Under the pieces are notes generated by a model. That model saw only the letters and a list, made by a program, of their open reading frames with translations, made no database searches and was not told the DNA's origin. A stretch of DNA of 64,000 bases. Origin: Styela clava (Eukaryota). Positions 51,382 to 64,000 of this stretch are shown here, one piece after another; the stretch's first letter is position 1, and each line of letters begins with the position of its first letter. Position numbers and translations under genes: made by a program. The DNA is taken from assembly GCF_964204865.1 (NCBI RefSeq), contig NC_135252.1:15314001-15378000 (forward strand), in the 5' to 3' direction.

Positions 51382-52303
51382 CCTATGACCCATGGTCTTC
51401 ATTTCTTCAATAAAAATATAATTTTTGACCCATTCCTTAAAAAACGTTTGTCCTGTACCAGCTGAGCCGTTTAATATCAAGGTACATACAATGTAAAATC
51501 AGCTAAATTAAGGATCGAATCATTTTTAAGCAGTATTATTTTATTATTAAAGATATAAGAAAAAATGGGAGATAAAAATGCAACCAACATTGTAATAATA
51601 TAAAAAGAACATAAAAAAATAACCTGAAATATATAAACTTTTCTTCCCGTAATCAAAACTTATCCATTTTCACACGATACAAATGATAGAATTTTGTTTT
51701 ACAAAATTACCCTGATCCAACAAAAGAAATTTACAAAACCTCCCTCAACCAACAAATCCCTGTAGTTCAGTGTTGAAAATTTTCAGGATTCCCATTCTCA
51801 ATTTTCCCCTGAACCACTACCAAACCCCATTCACTTAGCAACCATGAAGGAGGTGTAAATAAATTCTACGTACTTGATATTGGTCGAAGTCGTTCGGGAA
51901 TATTGTGCTCTTGTCATTAATTTTGTCAGGATTATGTGGTTTTAAAAACTTAATCTGACCATTTTTACCAAGCTTTGTCAAGATTCAACTCGGAACATAA
52001 CATGCAATTAAATTCACCTACAAGCAATTTTCTTTGCATAAAAGTAATCCCATTTAATGTCGGCCAAAAAAACTCAACGTTCCAAATGTTTAGCAAAGAA
52101 TTAAAACTGTCAATAAATTAATTAGTTCAAGCATAAACAGTGGATTATAGCCAAATGCTTGAATTATTGACAAAATTTTGGGAATTGGAAGCATGACAGT
52201 GGCTTTCGATATTTCTATTTTCACGCCACAAATAGAATGATTGGCAATGTAAGGCGTCTGCAATCACATTTTTATTATATATTTGCATATAAATGTGCTT
52301 AAA

Positions 52304-55300
52304 CTACTCTTTTGCTGCTTTTTTAGCATTCCATAATAAAACTAAATGTTCCGGTATAGTATTATTTTTCATCATTGTACGAAACTTGTCTTTCAGCATG
52401 ACTGAAGTTCTGCTATTAAAGACCTCGTATCCGTCATCTAGTATTGTCGACCAATTTCCTGGTCCATGTTTCTCAAGTCCCGAAAGAAATTCTTTGACTT
52501 CAGCATCTGTCCACAGGTTTCTCCTTGAAGTAGCTGACTGTCGTTGCATCCTTGATATTTCACGTTGTCGTTTTTCTCTGATTTCTTTTGTGTAAGAATC
52601 TCGGCGATGACTCTTCCTTATCCTTTTTCTTGGAGATTCGTCAAATTTTTTAAAGGGCTGCTTGAAATTATTTAGGACGCTTGGACGAATAGGAGATCCC
52701 ACTGGAATTGAAACATATAAGAAGAATAGAAGAAGCAAAATAAGTAGTTCTACATTCAAATGAAATGGACTCGTAACTTCAGACAAACATTTTAAGCCAT
52801 CTCTATATTTTAACCCAGATCTAGGAGCTGATTCTAAATCACAATTTCTCCATACCCACAGATTCATAATTCACCTTATAAGATAGGCTCAAGCAATTGT
52901 TGTTTTTTAGTATGAACAACTACCATGAAACTCCAGCCCAAAGGTAGTTTCGTGGCAGTGATACACAAATAAGGGTTTCAGATTAAACTGGTGACACTAA
53001 TATTTTAAAAACTACAATTATAAATGCTGTTAAGTTCTTTTTTAACTTTGGAAATAAATTTCCAACTTTTCGAATGCAGAAAAATTTAAAAAAATTGCTT
53101 GCATTACATTGTTTCACATGTCTTCTTCTTTCAAGTTGAGGTGATGGTGAACGTGACGTTGAATTACTGCTACTACTTGCTTCCAGCAAACTTGGGGACT
53201 GCTTCCGCAAAATGAATTTTGGTCGCCTCTATCAGAAAAGAAACAAAGAGAATAAAATGCTGATTGGTCTAAAACTCCAGCACGTGAGAAAAATGTCAAA
53301 TTTTATGCAATATGCTTAAAACATGGTTAAATGTTTACTACTGCCTACTGTCGCAGACGATCTCATATATACGATTCAAACTTCTGAAAACTGATAACAG
53401 GCTATCTGACCCCATACCCAATATGAATTAGTAACCAGACGAGAGGCCGGGATTTACCATATGATTAAGGCGTCTGATCGGCTCCTGGGATAAATATGTA
53501 AATCATGTTCTATATATCTTTACATCAGGGTTATCAGTAGATAACAGTTCTTCAGCAGAGATGTGACAGTAATATTGCACTCAAGGGCATATCATTGATC
53601 TGTACCAGGTGTAGCATGAAATTTGTGTCTGAGGGCAATTTCCTGCCCTATCAAAACAAGATAACAAATGTACCGTTTGAGTTCCTGCATCAATAGATTT
53701 ATTCAATTTTGCATTAGATTTTTTTGATTTCGATTTTCTCTTGATAGGAGCTGAAATACAAGCACCGGATTAATTGAATGATTTTCACAAGATGAAATCA
53801 TGTACATCTCATCTTAATCATTAAATGTGATAGGTTTCAAACTTTGAATTATCTGAATTGAACCAAAAGCTAGGAATAACGATGGATATATGGACCCAAT
53901 TATGATTTGAGTGGCCCTCTCCAGAGACAAAGGGTTTGATTTGTAGTGTATTTTGTGAAGACTTTTTTTAAAAAAAACTAAAAAATTCGTACTTGATTGT
54001 TCCAGCAGCAATTCCTCTTGAAATTCTTTCTCTGATGCAATTTCTTCAATACTTGAATGACTCGATTCAATTTGTCGTCTTTGAAATACTGATGGTTTGT
54101 TTGGAACAGTCACTGAGCTTATATCACTCTATTATAATGAAAAGGGCAGCATAAATAACATTTTTTACATCATCTCGATAGGAAAAAGGGTCGACATGAT
54201 TGAATAATTTGCAGTCTGGTTACAAAGTCAAGTAGAACAACTAGATCAGGCAATCATTTCAGATATACAGATCTGATGCCATCACACAAACTTGACAATT
54301 TTATTAACAACAGTTTCCATTTTAAATGAATACTTTACTCATATTTTTATGAACTTTTGCAACTCTAATAGACACAACTAACAATTTTATTATATACCTC
54401 TGGACTGTCAACACTCTCTCTGCCAGAATCTCTGAAAAAAAAAAATATTCTTGATTATCAAACCCAAAAAAGCACAAAATCCAGTCGAAGACTGTTAAAC
54501 GCAGGAAATTAGGAATTTAATGAAAATTCAGGATAGTGATAAGAAGCAATTATGGATTCGGATCACCATTAACGTCAACCTGAAGTATAAATAAAAAAAA
54601 ATAATCCTTAATTACTATAATCACAGTAATATCTCGGTAGTCAAACAACTCGATACTCGAAAAATTCGGTAGTCGACCAAAGTATACCAAAGTCAAAATT
54701 CTGTGATACTCTTAACGAAAATTCGGAGCTCGAACACTCGAGCCAAGTGCGGCCTAGTAAGATGACTCCACCCGAATCGCGCATCTCGACTGCCTCTCGT
54801 CTATTCAACAAGCATCAGTTCAAGTCAGAACGTTAGCGGGATAACAAAAATTTTGTGATTTAGTGCTTTTTTGCCGTTGATCAAAGCTCCAAAAGAGTGA
54901 GTGTAAAAGTAAGTGATAAAAAGGAAAACAGTGAAAAAAACTAGTTGAAAAAAGGTAGGTGTTCGAATGTGTGACCTCGTCTTACAGCATGGTGTATGTT
55001 TTATTTATGAGCTTTAGGCACGATTAAACAATTTTATTAAAATAATGACCATTGTTCAAGACAAAAAAAGATTTGGTACTGGAACAAATCATTAGTCGAA
55101 CACCAATTCTGAACGAATTATGTTCGACTACCTACGTTTAACTGTAATTTTATCCAACTATTGTAAAATATATTCATTTTATATTCATTCAATAATGCCT
55201 CACTTTTTGCTTTGACTCTGAATTCTGTTCTGAAGTTCATCAGTAACAGCTTCACATCTTCGTTGCAAATTTTCATCACGACAAAAAATTTCACGATCAT

Positions 55301-58300
55301 CTTCATTCACATAAATTTGACCGTTTTCTATCATTTCATCCCACCTAAAGAGTTTGGGTTAACCCCAAAAGAGGAAAGATGATAAGGCCATCTTTACGGC
55401 AAACCCTGGCTAACAAGCTCAAGTTGGTTATTAAAATGACAGTGTCGGGTTGAGGTCACTGAATGGTAATCAGTTGAGTCGCCAAGTAATGTTACTCAAA
55501 TGACTCAAAGAAAATTTTGGGACCTCCTGAAGTATGCGCGCCAAGATGGCGCACAACCTGAACCCACGTTGTGTACCAGGTTGGGGTTCAGGTTATGCGA
55601 CATCTTGGTGCGCATACTTCAGGAGCACCAAATTTTGAATAGTCGCCATTTTTTTCTTTGCCAAAGATCAAATGCAAATTGACATGTGAATTCTTTTCTT
55701 TAGAGTGATTTAATGATGAAACATGTTTGTTATCGTGTGTGGACACTCAGCCAACTGTATGAGTGATGAATTCTATGCTTTCAGTAATTTTAGTAGTTTG
55801 GAGGACTCATTACAATAAGTATTCAGGATTCAAAAAAATAATCAATTCGTTTCTGAAAGCACCAGTTATTCGGAAATGCCCAGCCCTGATTACTTCTTCA
55901 CAAGTAACTTTTAACCTGTTCTGCATATCAGTTGTAGTAATATTTGAATTGAAATTGAAATATCCCTTTAACATTTCCCATCTCATGCCTAGATGTCTCG
56001 CACCACATAACAGATAAGCATCTTGTTTAGGTGTGAATGCAACAACTTTTGACTGTCTTGAAAATCTTGAACCAGACGATTTCTCGACATGATTTCTCTC
56101 CGATGAATTTATTGACATCATGTCAAACCTAGAGAAATGACATGAATGATAAGAGTGACAATTTTTTATTTAAAAAAAAACACATTTGTAGAATTGGTAA
56201 ATTGAATAACATACTTTATTTGACTGATTCAAAGTGAACTGACTCATACTAAGTTCACTGATATATCAGGTGAATAAGGGATGGGCGTACAAGTAAGTGT
56301 GGTCAGAACCTTCCCCCCTTTTTGATATGTAAAAAAGGCATTTTCCTGTATCATACTTGAAGCGCTTCTTAGACCCTCAAGAAAAAACCCAAGTTTTCCA
56401 GCCTCATGCCAGACCCGCTAGTCGTTACGGTCTTACTTGACAATTCGAATTTTCAGACCCCCTTCGAAAATTCTTGGGTGTACCCCTAAATTAAGGTTGC
56501 CTACCTTTAATTAAATCTAGCCTGTGTTTTTATCAGTGTTTGAATCCTAGTGCCTTAGTGGCAATAAAATTATTTATTTTGTTGTTTTCAATAATTATAT
56601 CTTGATATCTAATTACTTATACATATTGATATCTAATGAGTTCGGATGATTTGAATTTTGGAAGTCTTATACTGTATAGCGAAATTTGAAACTGATAATA
56701 GTGCAAAGATAATGAAATTCATTAGAAAACGGTTAAGCATGATACACTATCTTCATAATTCTGCTCAAATTAGGTTTTTGTGACTTGAGGGAAGCAGTAC
56801 TGCATTATACAATTCTGCTTTGCAATTACCACTGAATTCTCTGAAGCTATGTATTACATCGCTGAATTTTGATCTCCTTGCACTCATATTTTACAGAAAA
56901 AGATAGGATTTTTGTTGGGGGCATACTAAATCTACATTAGATATGATATAATCACATAAAATGGTAACAACAACGAGCAATCCGCATTATAATAATACTA
57001 AGGCATAAAAAATTGAACTTATAACTATCTCTCACTCTTGTTGTCGAGATGATGACTTCTTTGTATTATCATCACTGTCTTCATCGATTTCATTGTGTGG
57101 CAATAATTTTCTTTTTATCACAGGTTTCACTTGTTTCTTGACAGGTTCACTTCTCCTTGAAGCTGGGGAACCTCTGGTAGATGAACCTGTATATAAACAA
57201 TAGTAAAAGTAGTACCAAGGCTATGTATATCGAACTGCAGGTCTTTTCACATTGACATCTTACTTCGGATCCGTACCTGGTCGTTGCCTCAAGGATGCTT
57301 AACGAGATGAAAAATAGGAATAAAATAATCTCTTTTCATGAAATAGTAAGTATAATTGTAAGCTTCCATTGGGTCATTGTCCGACTTTTTATAATTAGAA
57401 ACCTATTTGTAATAATCTTGATAGAAAGCAGTTAGGCATAAATAGTCAACCAGACATTCCAAGCATAAAGAATGTTTTTTGCGTCCTTTCGCATCCACAA
57501 AAAGTCTAACACCATGAATGACAAAAAGAAATTACATTTTTCCCAAAGAATATTTGCACATGTTTGAGGTAGCATTGGCTTAATCATATCCGAGAACATT
57601 GTTTGGTTTCTCGCAGTTAGAAATGACAGTGCATGAAAATAAGTGAAAGTACTGTGGTAAGGTGTTTTGGTGCTTGGAACACCATGTGTAGAAGACAGTA
57701 AAGATGAAAAAATTATTCTAATCTGATAAAAACAAAGTCATGCAACGAAGTAAATTTTATTTTCTGCCCTGATTGAGATATTGCCCCACAACTAATGAAT
57801 ACCCAAATGTGCGTAACCTTGCACGTTTCATTGGGAGCAATGATAGGCAATTGCTTAACATCAAGAACAAATAGTTGATTTATATTATAGGAACACAGAC
57901 CATAATTCCAACTTTATTCTTGACTCAACTCATTCAGCTATAGTATCACCAGTCTGTGTTAGGAAAAAAGTGTACATACCTCTGTCATAGTTATTATATC
58001 TTTTGTTAGCAGCATTTTCATTCTTATCCTTATTCATTTTAGCTTCAGCTGCCGCTAGCTTTGATTTTAAAACTAGATTCAGCACATTGAAATCACCATC
58101 ATCCAATATTGCAATGTGTTTTAGTTTGATCAAGTTCCGAAACCTGAGAATAAAATTTTCTTTTTGGAATTGACTAATTTATTTGTTTTAAGGAAAAGCA
58201 AACTAAATGTTATATCAAACTGTAGTGACGCAACGAATAAAAATGAAACATTTTATATAAATTTCAATGCTAGATCCCAATGTGGGCTTGATAGCATAGT

Positions 58301-61300
58301 GGTTTGAGAAATGGACCCAACTTTCAGCTGCCTATCTCACCTATCCTTGATCTTAACATTTGTGCAGCCTTGTGGAAATGGAAAAGCATTTAATGTTTTT
58401 GTCCATTGTCCAATCCCAAAATGCCGGCATCCAACGACAATATAGGAATCCAGGTCGCATGTGAAAGGTATTCGTCTTCTGCTACTGTATGTTCGACTAC
58501 TAACTGATGAGTGAAATGTTGAATTCAAATCTTCAAATCTAAATATGGAAACAGCAAATAAGTTGCTTTTAAAATTGGGAAATTTCATTGTTTTGCCTTG
58601 AAATGACCAGGCTTTAGTCTACAGCCTCTACACCAAATTTGAAATTCAAAGTGATGAATAAATGCGTTTATATAATAATTCACAATTGGGAATCTTGCGA
58701 TCTCATTCATTCAATGTGGATATATCAGCTGGGTAATGCACTTCAATATTTCAAAAATTTTAATTTTGTTTGCTTGATAATACGAGCTTGAAAATGTCGT
58801 TCAATTCCTTGCATCAAACATTTGTTAGTATCGATATCACAACTATTAATTCATTCAAAAGCGTCAGTAACTGTTCCTCATTAGTGTTTCGATTCTTAGG
58901 TGAGGTTACTTATTCCGTTTGAGCTATGCCTGTCAATAATCAATCATAAGTTCCTGATGGATCCTAGTTGATGTGACATGGATGGACAGTTAAACGGAGT
59001 AAATAATCAAACCCTCAATCAAGTTAAAAAAAGTGAACATCAAATTTTAACGCTGTAAATGGAACCAGCTTGAAATTCAGATTCAAAAAAATACGGTACT
59101 CCCGAAGTATGTGAACCAAGATGGTGGTCACCGAAACGTAATATGTGTAGCAGGTTAGGGTTAGGCCATAATTTTATTCCAATTTTCCTTATTTTAGTTC
59201 TATCAGGAGTTCGGGGACTATCCAAGTGACTCCCGAAGCATTTGCACCTGGAATTTTGTCTAACTCTAACCTGGTACACACACTACGTTCTGGTGTCCGC
59301 CATCTTGGGTCACATACTTCAGGAGAACCAAAAAATTCAAGGAACAACTATATTGGAAATATCCTAACATTCAAATTGGCGTAGTATTTTTCTTTGTAAA
59401 TTTTTTTATTTTTTTTTTGCGCCATGACTTTTGTTCAAAATAAAAGATATTGTATTTTATCATCTTCTTACCTTTCTCCTAATAAGAGATTTCGTGGAGA
59501 AATATCTGGCTTGTAAGGAGCCTTTGACAAAGCCTCTGAAATAAAAAAACAAAGTAATGATTCCAAGACATTTGAAACATCAAAGACTGACATCAATATT
59601 TTAAAATATATTGTGAAATAAAGACTAATCGATAAGTGACTCACTTGCTCAAAAAATACATATCAACCAAAAAATACATATCAGTTAAAATGATATGGTA
59701 CTCAGGTGTGCTCAAACATCCGAGTGCGTCGTCCAGACAGATGAAGCCATCCCGAGTCGCACATCTCGGTTGCCTCGAGATCACTCAACAAGTAAGCGAT
59801 GCTCAAATATATCATTCGAACAAATTGATAGTCGAACACCAATACTGAACAAATTAAGTTCGACTACCGATGTATCACTATATTTAATATTTCAAAATTA
59901 ATGAATGCAATCAATAATCAAAATAATGTATGACATGAAATTCTGTAGTTAGACTATTGTATACTCTTCAAGTTAGGTCTTGTGCCATAATACCATTTAT
60001 GTGTTATATCCCCATTGTTTTCAACTTTCAAAACATTTTTTTTTTCAAGTTTTGTTTGATTTTCTTAAATTTCTGTTGAAATATAGTTTTTATCAAAGCA
60101 TATACACAAACTAATTGTGCAGGTCACAGAACTGGCAATTTAGTTAAATATGTAAGAGGATGTAGTAATTATCTTGAACGGAATTGATTTCTGATATTAC
60201 TAAAAACTTTTCTCCATCGATATTAAAAAGATTCATAATAATGCTTACCTGCTGTTAAAGGTGCATATGCTTTCTTTTTACTTTTTACATATGGTTGCTT
60301 TGAACTTCCAGTCTCAATTTCTTCAATTTCATTATGAATTTCTCGGCAGTGTTTCACGATATGTTTGCAAGGAATTATTATACCTGAGAAGTCGGATTTA
60401 ATATTAGTAAATGTTTTAGTTATAAATGCAAAGTTCACTCTCACTTCATAATCAGCAAAATCATCAATCAAGTAATAAATGCAAGCTAAACAGACAACTG
60501 TTTTCACTTTGATATATATTCTTACAGAATTAACAATCAATTACGATGTCCTTTAAAATCTGTTCATAGAACAGACTAGAGTGAGATATTGGTAAATTTA
60601 AACCACACAAGCTGAAGATTAGAATCCACTAACGTTTTCGCTGTCCTGTTTAACAATAGCGGAATTCCAAGACACTGGCAATCATATCAGATATACCGGC
60701 ACCAAAACAAACTTTTCCATAATGAAATAATACCTGAATTATGAATTTGCTTCTTTAGTCTGTATGTGAGACCTATTTTTGGATCTAATTTTTCCATACT
60801 ATTGTTATCATTGGTTGTGTCTTCATCACTTTCCTGATCTTCTTCACTGTCTGGAATTTCAATCAATGGTTTTGTTTTTGCAATTTTCTCTTGTACATTT
60901 CCTGAATCTGATGACGAAACTAGAAAAAAGAAACAATGACTTTGTATTGACAATAAATACATGATGGAAGGTTGTCCTTATTGAATAGCTTACTAGCCTA
61001 AAATTTTTTTCCAAAACTTCAACTCAGCTTCAACAAAATGAATGAGAGTTTGATAAACTAAAAATTCACAAGAAATACACACTTTCGATCACCAGAATGC
61101 ATTAAAAAACGTCATTAATTTTGCTTATACTATGTTGTTAAGAATACTCATTATGGTACTATCAGATGACAATATAGCTCCAAGTTTCTATCTACAATTT
61201 GACAACTAGATTTATTGGAGTATTCCATTTCCACAACCTAATTCTAAAATATTTCAAAACAAAGAAAAATATTTTGATTTTGTATATTCTGAACCATCCT

Positions 61301-64000
61301 CAAAAATGCGTTAACACATTATAGATGGTCTTAAAAAATCACAGATATTATCTAATGTTGTAGGTAACCCAGAGCAGAGGGGAAAAGCCAATTGTATTGG
61401 TATACAATATACATCATTATCTAGTTTGAATGAATGTAAATTACCATCAATAAGTGTGTCATCTTCTTCAGCCTCCATAGTTGTATCAACTTCATTATTC
61501 TCTTCCATTTCTTCTGGAGGTTCATCCATGTTTATTCCATCTATATAAAAAACAAATTTAGATCGGTGGTTTCCATATCGCACAGCATTAAAGCCGAATA
61601 ACCATAACGCTAGCAAAGCGTTGCATGAATAAATAGCTAATCAACCCTGTCACTGGAGCTGAGCTTACCACATTAGATAGAGCCAAGGGCTACCAGGAAT
61701 TTTCTTAGCTCTTAACCATCCATTATTTTTTAAGGTCAAAACTTAAAAGTATAAAATAGTAAAATTTATTCTTTTTAGCGTATATTTTTTTTATAAATTC
61801 CAAGTTCTAATATTAATATTTTTATTTAAAAGTCAAGTGTTTAATTTCAAAGTTTGAAATCAATATAATTATCACAGTTTTGAGTCTCCAGCCCTGAACA
61901 TAACAAATTCCAATAATAATACTACCAATAAAAATATGAGGAAAAAATTGCGACCTATCTGCGAGTATGTACGGGAATTATCACAGTTTCTGAGTCCCCA
62001 GCCCTGGACATAACAAATTCCAATAATAATACTACCATGGTCCATGTCACTTCCTGAATCTACCACGTCTTCATATTGATCCTCCTCATCATTTTGTTCT
62101 TTCACTGAAGTACTGATTTTCGCAGCAAATCTGTGTAATGTTGTCTTAGGTAATTGATTGTTCAAACCTAAAATTTAAGTAAATTTTTGCAAAAACAGAA
62201 ACTTTTATTAAACACACATTTATTTAAATATACAATTCAAAAAGGAAGTTATTTCTAGAAGCCACATCCAAACTTCCATGCCATTATTCCTTAGTATATA
62301 ATCAACATACCTTTTATAAAAGTCGCCATTACAAAATAATATGAAGTATAATCATGTCCATCAGTCCTAGCCAGCTTTTCGATATCAAGCTTCTTATTCA
62401 AAGTCCTTTCGATTAGTTTTTCCAACATCTTTTTTTGTTCCTGAAAGAAGATGTCACGGATATTAATGATTTGCAACTAATTTCGGTTGGAAATCCATAA
62501 ATGGATTTACTTTGAATAAAAAAAAGTAAAATTTGGCATTTTTCGTGATTTCAAGCATATGCAGTTAATAAGAGGAGCATATTTACAAGTATTGGTCCTT
62601 TTTCTCTGCCTATATGTAGGCTACATTTATTTCAAATAGCATTACTTTAGAAATGCATTTAAATTGGGTAAATTCTCTAAAAGGTACATTTCCGCTTTAC
62701 CTCATTAATCCGATCTCGATAAAGAACTAGGATTTTTGATGCTTCAACTGATTGTTTCTTCCTTAAAAATGCAATAACTGCCTGCTTTACAGTATGATGC
62801 CAAATGTCACAGAAATTCTGCAAAAAATAATAAAACTCATTCTCACGTTATAAACATTGAAGAATTTGAAAACCTAAGAAATGAATGGCACAGTTACCGG
62901 TACCTCTAAATCGATGCCTATTGATTTTCTAAAGATTCCTAAAGGCTTTTGATCTAAACTAAACACAAGATTGTAAATAGATCTATCTCTTGACTCAAAA
63001 TCTTTTTTTAAATATAGCATCAGTGTCAAAAGTAGATTGTCATGCAGCATAAGCAATACAGTGTCTATCCATATGGCGGGAATATACACTAACATTAACA
63101 TTATCAGTTTTATATTATCAAAATAATTTTGAAAACATAGTCATTACATCTCCATAGCATGAAAGTACAATAATGTCCAAATAATTTTGTCTTCTATAAT
63201 TCAATTAGAGGTGATAAAGTTTAGAAAAAAACACCAATTTGGATTGTGTGAATTATAACAGAACATGGTAATAAATATCAACAGTCAAAATTTATTTGTA
63301 CTAAATTCTTGGCACTTTAATGACTTACCGGATGTTTGATTACATTTTGAAATGCCAGTGCAATATCACTCAAGCGAATGAGAGCAGTTTCTAATGGAGC
63401 CAAATTCTCAGAAGTAAACCTCTGGTCAATATGTTCACCTAACATCAAGCTGGAATTATATAAAACAATACAAGATTAAAAATATTTAACTTGATATTAA
63501 TTGGACGGATTTGGTAGATGACAAGCTGTATTGTTGGCTCAGTGTTTCTCAACTGGAGGAATTTTGTTAGGAGTGAGAGTTGAGCATAATACTAGTTAAG
63601 CATTTATTAACTACTGAACAAAGAACAGAGTTTTACGCACAGTGGGGGAGGAAAAAGAGATCTTAAATCAGCATAAAATGGAATGTATCGAAAAAAATTA
63701 GAAACAATTACTTTAGCTAATTGTTATGCACTAAATCAAAATTTTGTTTTTTAATTAATAAGTATTAGAAAAATAACAATTGAGGGACAGCAGCATTGTA
63801 TCACGGTAAATGAAAAATATCACAATGTAGAGACAATGCAATCAAGCCCCTGTTGGTCAAGGATGGGATCTTCTTAATCCTAATAACTAGCATTATTATT
63901 AAGGATTTCGTTATTTCCAAATTTAAATACAAGCTCTGAGTCTTTTATCAGTGCCTAAGAATCGAATTGATATTTATCAAATTAGTAAATGTACTTACCA
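52304..64000 (-). CDS. TERF: Telomeric repeat-binding factor (TRF1/TRF2 family) with TRFH domain and three Myb/telobox domains; 5' end lies beyond the right edge
   Basis: Phase-consistent exons >64000-63999, 63449-63329, 62817-62701, 62440-62311, 62167-62036, 61540-61445, 60919-60734, 60383-60249, 59535-59472, 58538-58341, 58143-57980, 57186-57036, 56128-55916, 55344-55204, 54431-54398, 54128-53993, 53750-53674, 53228-53108, 52701-52304 (872 codons in window including stop). TRFH-like LGEHIDQRFTSENLAPLETAL...VKQAVIAFLRKKQSVEASKIL...LHRFAAK. C-terminal telobox WTDAEVKEFLSGLEKHGPGNWSTIL...RTSVMLKDKFRTM. Confidence 0.88.
53385..53505 (+). mobile_element. SINE 3' fragment
   Basis: cccataccc...gacgagagg...gggataaatatgtaaatc matches the SINE tail. 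Confidence 0.6.
54624..55144. mobile_element. Tc1/mariner (pogo/Tigger-like) MITE, degenerate
   Basis: CAGTAATATCTCGGTAGTCAAAC vs right end GTTCGACTACCTACGTTTAACTG|TA. A related fragment lies at ~59700-59880. Confidence 0.55.
55520..55629. mobile_element. Short MITE (GG termini, 8-bp TSD)
   Basis: GGACCTCCTGAAGTATGCGCGCCAAGATG / CATCTTGGTGCGCATACTTCAGGAGCACC, TSD AAATTTTG. Confidence 0.85.
55815..55888 (-). mobile_element. Fragment of the 51000-51381 hAT MITE in a TERF intron
   Basis: Minus-strand CAGGGCTGGGCATTTCCGAATAACTGGTGCTTTCAGAA aligns with TAGGGCTGGGCATTTTTGAATACCTGATGATTTCAGAA. Confidence 0.75.
59095..59329. mobile_element. MITE with long TIRs containing TTAGGG-like repeats
   Basis: GGTACTCCCGAAGTATGTGAACCAAGATGG / CCATCTTGGGTCACATACTTCAGGAGAACC. 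TSD AAAAAATAC/AAAAAATTC. GGTTAGGGTTAGG at 59153-59165. Confidence 0.85.
61868..62037. repeat. ~60-bp direct duplication that includes a TERF splice donor
   Basis: tatcacagttt(c)tgagtc..cagccctg(a/g)acataacaaattccaataataatactacca at ~61870 and ~61979. Confidence 0.85.

Follow-up and report, generated by a model that had tools for sequence, protein, structure and literature searches.

A transcribed gene on the minus strand

The window analysed here is a stretch of 64,000 nucleotides from the ascidian Styela clava (RefSeq assembly GCF_964204865.1, contig NC_135252.1, positions 15,314,001 to 15,378,000 of the forward strand), and positions given below are those of the window unless stated otherwise. 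From position 52304 onwards it carries, on the minus strand, an expressed and apparently unannotated gene for a putative TRF-like protein, in which a C-terminal telobox (Myb-C) is preceded by two diverged internal Myb modules (Myb-A and Myb-B). The region is AT-rich (~33% GC) and without long open reading frames (ORFs), as expected of an intron-rich animal gene on the minus strand.

Evidence for transcription comes from Logan contigs of four runs belonging to three studies, which align to positions 52640-58630; these are contigs rather than raw reads, and the label that gives their kind, "RNA?", is a guess. The contigs contain nine canonical joints, with CT..AC ends on the plus strand that correspond to GT..AG on the minus strand, and because these spliced joints are exon-exact, the contigs are derived from cDNA. 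The same nine joints occur in runs from the three studies and define 10 exons, from 58538 down to 52304, through which phase arithmetic, carried out exon by exon, gives a single open frame ending at the stop codon 52306-52304. The first of these exons (58341-58538) encodes the Myb-A core (58480-58341), which runs from the basic arm through helices 1 and 2 into the beginning of helix 3 and stops at KIKD; the second (57980-58143), placed by RNA joints, phase and a split Arg codon, encodes the rest of helix 3 (FRNL...) and a post-Myb extension. A linker exon with basic and acidic stretches (57036-57186) separates Myb-A from the Myb-B exon (55916-56128), whose Myb core (56049-55916) ends in DMQN and is completed (WDEM...), again with an extension, by the exon at 55204-55344, as deduced from RNA joints, intron position and alignment. 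Four Ser/Lys-rich hinge exons with basic patches follow (54431-54398, 54128-53993, 53750-53674 and 53228-53108), and the last exon (52304-52701) encodes a basic stretch, Myb-C (Pfam match at 52522-52373) and the stop codon.

Two contigs, X5 record 10 (2538 nt) and X7 record 13 (2456 nt), begin upstream of Myb-A and reach the last exon. The X5 contig is accounted for in full by 1273 nt that precede Myb-A, the nine exons from 58538 to 53108 (1235 nt) and 30 nt of the last exon; additional exons between Myb-A and the last exon are therefore excluded, and a single assembled transcript carries Myb-A, Myb-B and the first part of the telobox exon. No joint that skips the Myb-A or the Myb-B exons is among those listed for the four runs. 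The only other listed joint, 53800 to 54120 in run X2, has non-canonical ends (TG..CT), a depth of 5 and 20 nt on its shorter side, and is probably an assembly artefact, not an isoform. A preliminary description of this DNA, made from its letters alone, had placed exon boundaries at 58538, 57980, 56128, 55204 and 52304, all of which coincide exactly with borders defined by RNA; the single transcript that it proposed is likewise borne out from Myb-A through the last exon.

That description also counted 19 exons in one frame, of which the ten just described are spliced in RNA and in frame, and the rest form an in-silico chain of exons with GT..AG borders, in phase. The nine predicted upstream exons within the window (59472-63449) would encode a helical N-terminal region, which is the candidate for a TRFH domain, and an acidic linker; they lie at 63449-63329, 63005-62904 (or -62898), 62817-62701, 62440-62311, 62167-62036, 61540-61445, 60919-60800 (or -60713), 60383-60249 and 59535-59472. 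Only the last two nucleotides of exon 1 (63999-64000) fall in the window, as read from its ORF and its donor (GTAAGT, 63998-63993); the exon extends over 64216-63999, and its ATG, at extended coordinate 64216, lies ~216 nt past the end of the window. A strong acceptor, TTTTCCTTTCAG, stands 6 nt before this ATG. Moreover, the donor predicted for upstream exon 6, at 62036, is copied in a 50-nt tandem-like duplication (61878-61927 and 61988-62037; 94% identity, copies 110 nt apart), which could offer an alternative donor. Among the upstream predicted exons, RNA confirms the last donor only: a loose contig end maps to 59474-59503, and the exon end was set at 59472 (donor GTAAGA) after allowing a 2-nt AG ambiguity. 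The predicted upstream chain (ten exons, including exon 1) totals 1235-1328 nt. For comparison, the part of the RNA contigs that precedes Myb-A measures 1273 nt (X5) and 1313 nt (X7), values that set a lower bound for the mRNA. Nineteen exons inside the window are therefore plausible, and the predicted protein has ~955-990 residues.

A full-length public protein of the window gene was not found among ~15 billion public proteins. The last exon, searched against 1.84 billion representative proteins, retrieved only the fragments P0002, P0003 and P0005; the Phallusia mammillata protein P0019 (see below), used as a query, matched only itself, and a profile of P0019 and nine exon rows found no Styela protein. 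No such protein was found although a neighbour on the same contig, a prefoldin-6 ORF upstream of the gene (L003:5969-6349, minus strand), stands in the NCBI annotated set, with 100% identity to LOC144421013 (Styela clava).

Three Myb modules of unequal conservation

A telobox hidden Markov model (HMM) was built from 266 domains taken from the 150 best matches of a search in the 1.84 billion representative proteins, and was run unfiltered against all 2404 six-frame ORFs of at least 20 residues in 72 kb. Myb-C came first (82 bits, E 2.4e-24), the Myb-A exon second (22.4 bits, E 1.1e-5) and the Myb-B exon third (17.2 bits, E 4.5e-4), and the next best ORF had an E value of 0.41. In tblastn with these 150 proteins, the matches to the Myb-A exon (dozens) and to the Myb-B exon (several) kept to one register throughout.

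Myb-C is a canonical telobox by several measures. At the exon level it scores 32.8 bits with Pfam PF00249 (cut-off 24.4). Its best match in PDB is human TRF1, followed by TRF2, and all 18 of its PDB matches at E <= 0.001 are telomeric Mybs, including TRF1, TRF2, Terfa and plant telomere-binding proteins. Between the end of the domain and the stop codon there are 21 residues. Helix 3 has the sequence V-M-L-K-D-K-F-R and is identical to that of TRF1 through RTSVMLKD. The fragments P0002, P0003 and P0005 are orthologous to the terminal exon, with 43-59% identity by phmmer and tblastn (59-63% over the Myb core), and these Logan fragments have in common with the window gene a signature made up of HGPGNW and a two-residue DDG[YW] insertion.

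Read across the exon junctions, helix 3 of Myb-A is V-K-I-K-D-R-F-R and that of Myb-B T-D-M-Q-N-R-W-D, and the core aromatic residues are F, W and F in the former and F, W and W in the latter. Both modules align with 16 reference Mybs without any register shift, their core aromatics and helix-turn-helix spacing being present, so that, as judged from the sequence, they have the features of Myb/SANT-type domains. All 14 PDB matches of the Myb-A exon found by phmmer are telomeric Mybs (zebrafish Terfa, TRF1, TRF2 and plant TBP1; best E 0.028), and for the Myb-B exon MYB21, a Myb of the generic kind, ranks first (E 0.078). Myb-A retains a basic arm (RRR) and the V..KD..R residues of helix 3; in Myb-B the base-contact residues of this helix are lost (T..QN..D). 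Against the K-D-R/K-W/Y-R motif described for the third helix of TRFs, Myb-C (K-D-K-F-R) fits at 4 of 5 positions, Myb-A reads K-D-R-F-R, and Myb-B Q-N-R-W-D.

These observations agree with most of what had been said of the modules in the preliminary description. The three Myb-like modules on one transcript are upheld by the RNA joints, the frame and the telobox HMM, and the quoted peptides are all present; the canonical C-terminal telobox is confirmed by Pfam and by TRF1 as the best PDB match; and, at the level of the residues themselves, Myb-A does keep the basic arm and V..KD..R, and Myb-B, with DMQNRWD, has lost the base contacts while keeping the three core aromatic positions. HMMER searches of the exons with Pfam are less uniform in outcome: Myb-C is found, but Myb-A, Myb-B and the TRFH domain that had been claimed are unmatched.

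The RNA contigs also carry polymorphisms, 15 synonymous against 9 nonsynonymous. All four single-nucleotide polymorphisms (SNPs) listed for the Myb-A exon are synonymous, and both of those listed for the Myb-B exon are nonsynonymous and lie upstream of the Myb core. The pattern fits purifying selection, in a small sample. A multi-Myb protein of the TERB1, SNAPC4, DMTF1 or TTF1 type was considered as an identity for the gene and rejected, because Myb-C and Myb-A match telomeric Mybs specifically.

A second telobox gene and the ascidian family

A search of the genome with Myb-C revealed a second telobox gene, at C18:17895974-17900860 on the plus strand. It was read as a pair of exons, an 861-codon open exon (L007:974-3556) and a following exon (L007:4982-5860), which are predicted from sequence to form one gene. 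In the long exon a helical, TRFH-like N-terminal region is followed by an internal Myb, and the next exon ends in a very canonical telobox (helix 3 KDRYR, 45 bits on Pfam). The internal Myb of the C18 gene is 41-46% identical to Myb-A, including a common FPFP motif.

Three public proteins, P0019 (Phallusia mammillata CAB3261678.1, "LOC100177249"-like), P0132 and P0119, carry an internal Myb together with a C-terminal telobox; P0019 and P0132 have a helical N-terminus as well, and P0119, of 304 residues, is without the N-terminal region. By tblastn, the C18 gene matches these proteins with E values of 1e-10 to 1e-14, whereas the internal Myb of the window gene reaches only 1e-4 to 1e-5. The window gene is therefore a paralog, not a one-to-one ortholog, and the C18 gene is the closer ortholog of the Phallusia protein. 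Thus, S. clava has two TRF-like paralogs, and the C18 copy looks more like the ancestral ascidian TRF. Like the window gene, the LOC100177249-like proteins of ascidians combine a helical N-terminus, the special internal Myb and a C-terminal telobox; they differ from it in having one internal Myb each, where the window gene has two. Moreover, an intron interrupts each internal module of the window gene; the single 861-codon exon of the C18 gene has no such intron.

The two internal modules resemble each other in ways that bear on their origin. Their introns fall at the same codon and in the same phase, splitting an Arg codon after KD in Myb-A and after QN in Myb-B. Both modules also show a signature that they have in common with the internal Mybs of the C18 gene, P0019, P0132 and P0119: a Phe in place of the first Trp, one extra residue in the loop between helices 2 and 3, and a post-Myb extension, the first two of which are absent from C-terminal teloboxes. 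Because of the identical intron position and the common signature, Myb-A and Myb-B are taken as tandem duplicates, and Myb-B would most likely have arisen through tandem duplication, within the window gene, of a two-exon unit encoding the internal Myb. An extra internal Myb is a trait of the ascidian family, and the window gene is the copy in which the module has been doubled. The preliminary description had proposed a multivalent shelterin core that would differ from the vertebrate one. The internal Myb as such is common to the ascidian family, and among the extra modules of the window gene Myb-B alone, which makes the array a triple one, is special to it.

The N-terminal region

The preliminary description had the gene encode a TRFH domain. 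At the exon level all the sequence tests of this claim are blank, and what speaks for it in the window is a set of collinear motifs recognised by eye. The hexapeptide PLETAL, in predicted exon 2, may correspond to PLMSAL at residues 104-107 of fish TRFs; a scan of 90,531 six-frame residues finds the pattern PL.[ST]AL a single time. Further TRFH-like motifs follow in the same order, KQAVIAF...EASKIL in exon 4, DYTSYYF in exon 5 and LPKTTLHRFAAKI in exon 6. Relatives provide indirect hints. The ESM Atlas model of the Phallusia relative has a match to a TRF1 cluster over residues 2-186, with a template modelling (TM) score of 0.67, and the N-terminus of the C18 paralog gives a local hhalign match to the C-terminal helices of fish TRFH, at the same offset (E 0.018). 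AlphaFold2 models of the C18 N-terminal domain were of low confidence, with a predicted local distance difference test (pLDDT) score of 38.6 for the sequence alone and 47.1 with a seven-row alignment, and Foldseek found no meaningful match for the latter model. When the N-termini of P0019, P0132, P0049, P0042 (the last two are introduced below) and the C18 paralog were compared with the window by phmmer and tblastn, only noise was obtained. The highly diverged N-terminal helical domains of both S. clava genes explain the failure of TRFH searches based on BLAST.

Comparison with known telomere proteins

The genome of S. clava has TTAGGG telomeres: a pattern of six TTAGGG units has 10,101 matches genome-wide, against 0 for a control. 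Arrays of the repeat are present at contig ends, and one begins at the very start of a contig (C1:37-996, minus strand). A metazoan TRF consists of a TRFH domain and a C-terminal TRF-like Myb, with a helix-3 motif, K-D-R/K-W/Y-R, that is given for all TRFs, and multi-Myb TRFs go unmentioned (Myler et al., 2021; PMC8653790). In the same work TRF proteins are reported as not found in the group of the sea squirt, which leaves open the timing of the TRF1/TRF2 duplication. Only a single telobox was reported in Ciona genomes (Poulet et al., 2012; PMC3315331). One ascidian genome with two telobox genes, expressed or intact, one of them with three Mybs, fills this stated gap in the evolution of shelterin. 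It also brings within reach of experiment the identity of the gene that caps ascidian telomeres, the relation of the pair to TRF1 and TRF2 (co-orthology or a separate duplication), and any effect of additional Mybs on the way in which a TRF engages TTAGGG arrays.

The window gene is like vertebrate TRF1 and TRF2 in its C-terminal telobox, its long hinge, its N-terminal all-helical region and the TTAGGG telomeres of its genome. It differs from them in having three Myb-like modules instead of one and no TRFH domain that sequence searches detect, and Myb-C itself departs from the telobox of TRFs in a Phe for Trp/Tyr, a two-residue insertion between helices 2 and 3 and a basic, not acidic, stretch before the Myb. 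The nearest functional precedent, by analogy only, is the pair TEBP-1 and TEBP-2 (DTN-1/2) of C. elegans, telomeric double-strand binders with three Myb-containing domains, of which only the third binds DNA and the first two form the dimerisation unit (PMC11032478). The TEBP proteins act on a different telomere repeat and have no obvious separate dimerisation domain, and, unlike their first two domains, Myb-A of the window gene still looks competent to bind DNA.

Several Mybs per polypeptide are also found in fungal Tay1, S. pombe Teb1 and budding-yeast Rap1, where binding is multivalent without a strict need for dimerisation. In these proteins the Mybs are adjacent and a TRFH domain is lacking, whereas the Mybs of the window gene are set apart by long linkers and the last of them is a telobox of the metazoan type. 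Among animals, the TRF models P0049 (ENA) and P0042 (Albula goreensis KAI1889072.1; with a Pfam TRF domain) have a TRFH or TRFH-like N-terminus and two near-identical telobox Mybs; these Mybs are not of the ascidian internal subtype, neither protein has three, and they may be recent Myb duplications or artefacts of the gene models. Extra Mybs would thus seem to have arisen more than once in TRFs.

Proposed function and competing explanations

We favour, with moderate confidence, the view that this is a transcribed S. clava gene of the TRF/telobox kind, with two diverged internal Mybs and a canonical C-terminal telobox, whose product would act at telomeres in a multivalent fashion. The C-terminal telobox would read duplex TTAGGG as TRF1 and TRF2 do, and Myb-A, with its arm and its helix-3 V, K, D and R kept, may provide a second contact with DNA. 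Myb-B, its base contacts lost, would serve as a structural or protein-binding Myb, as in TEBP-1/2, and the helical N-terminal region may be a very diverged dimerisation domain of the TRFH type. From the residues that each module has kept or lost, it is reasonable to suppose that Myb-C, and perhaps Myb-A, would bind TTAGGG and that Myb-B would have a role other than DNA binding.

Several observations weigh against this view. The RNA check covers the 3' half of the gene, and the nine upstream exons in the window are predicted in silico. Pfam (hmmscan on 20 exon ORFs) has Myb-C as its sole match and finds no TRFH, and PF00249 gives no match at E <= 1 for the Myb-A or the Myb-B exon, in each of which helix 3 is cut off halfway. 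PF08558, searched in six frames across the entire genome, yielded two spurious matches elsewhere; the exons of the TRFH candidate, compared with PDB by phmmer, retrieved nothing relevant; bona fide fish TRFH did not match the window by phmmer; with an HMM of three fish TRFH sequences the window exons rank 43rd and lower among 1777 domain matches; and exon 1 was blank in the protein-language-model Atlas. Even with the C18 paralog and P0019, no similarity of the N-terminal exons could be detected. In Myb-C, the Phe of helix 3 departs from the motif given for all TRFs (Myler et al., 2021), and directly before the domain, where TRF2-type proteins have an acidic iDDR-like region, the sequence is strongly basic. 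Finally, the more canonical C18 paralog could be the main telomere binder and the window gene could have another role; the earlier idea of a shelterin core is thereby weakened, and the window gene cannot be assumed to be the single one.

This last point leads to the alternative that the window gene is a telobox paralog that left telomere capping, the C18 gene having kept the shelterin role. Its product would then be a chromatin or transcription factor that uses several Mybs to bind interstitial TTAGGG-like or other sites, and would be comparable to yeast Tbf1 and to the plant TRB/TRFL proteins. We judge this somewhat unlikely. It accords with the presence of a more canonical paralog in the same genome (45 bits, KDRYR), with an N-terminal region unrecognisable as TRFH, and with the insertion of two residues, the helix-3 Phe and the basic flank of Myb-C. 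However, among solved structures Myb-C is closest to human TRF1 (E 4e-11), with V, K, D and R kept, the same type of terminal exon is kept in at least three other organisms (P0002, P0003 and P0005), and nothing points to a different target sequence.

A further reading, which we regard as doubtful, is that TRF was duplicated in ascidians independently of the split between TRF1 and TRF2, and that the window copy became a triple-Myb telomere binder, in which an internal Myb competent for DNA and a degenerate Myb that binds a partner supplement or replace dimerisation through TRFH. If true, the gene would be a chordate counterpart of the solution found by the nematode TEBP proteins, a design of the shelterin double-strand binder not seen in vertebrates.

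It is quite improbable, in our estimate, that the protein functions as a TRF with a single Myb, and that Myb-A and Myb-B, left over from an internal duplication, are decaying and now act as nothing more than hinge sequence. For this reading it can be said that both modules score below the Pfam thresholds, that Myb-B is without any base-contact residue, and that the two SNPs listed for its exon are nonsynonymous, though upstream of the Myb core. Yet the three core aromatics and the spacing of the helices are retained in A and B, the four listed polymorphisms of the Myb-A exon are all synonymous, an internal Myb is retained in Phallusia, P0132, P0119 and the C18 gene, and no transcript that skips these exons was seen among the listed joints. 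A chimera, in which de Bruijn contigs would have joined two genes, one for an N-terminal helical protein and one for a Myb protein, is scarcely credible and was rejected: although the runs are represented by Logan contigs and not by raw reads, their RNA status is guessed, and they align over the 3' half only, with upstream exons predicted, the nine joints are identical in three studies, their GT..AG borders are exon-exact and the frame is unbroken, two contigs reach 1273 and 1313 nt upstream of Myb-A, matching the predicted 5' exons, and the loose contig end beyond Myb-A falls within the predicted exon ending at 59472.

Repeats and neighbouring ORFs

No Rfam family matched positions 52000-64000. 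A palindromic element resembling a miniature inverted-repeat transposable element (MITE) lies at 55512-55632, with 49-nt inverted arms (88% complementary) and an 18-nt spacer, and a related copy is found at ~59040-59340. The element thus occurs in two introns of the gene, and because the summed depth of RNA contigs over it is ~20,000, as opposed to 10-90 on the exons, it is a very abundant, transcribed dispersed repeat. A 68-nt direct repeat (82% identical), with copies at 55082-55149 and 59818-59885 in two different introns, is probably also a dispersed element. About 750 nt upstream of the TRF-like gene, at extended coordinates 64965-65804 (L003:965-1804, minus strand), there is a single-exon ORF of 280 codons that looks, by eye, like an alpha/beta hydrolase; the prefoldin-6 ORF and another ORF are located further upstream, on the same strand.

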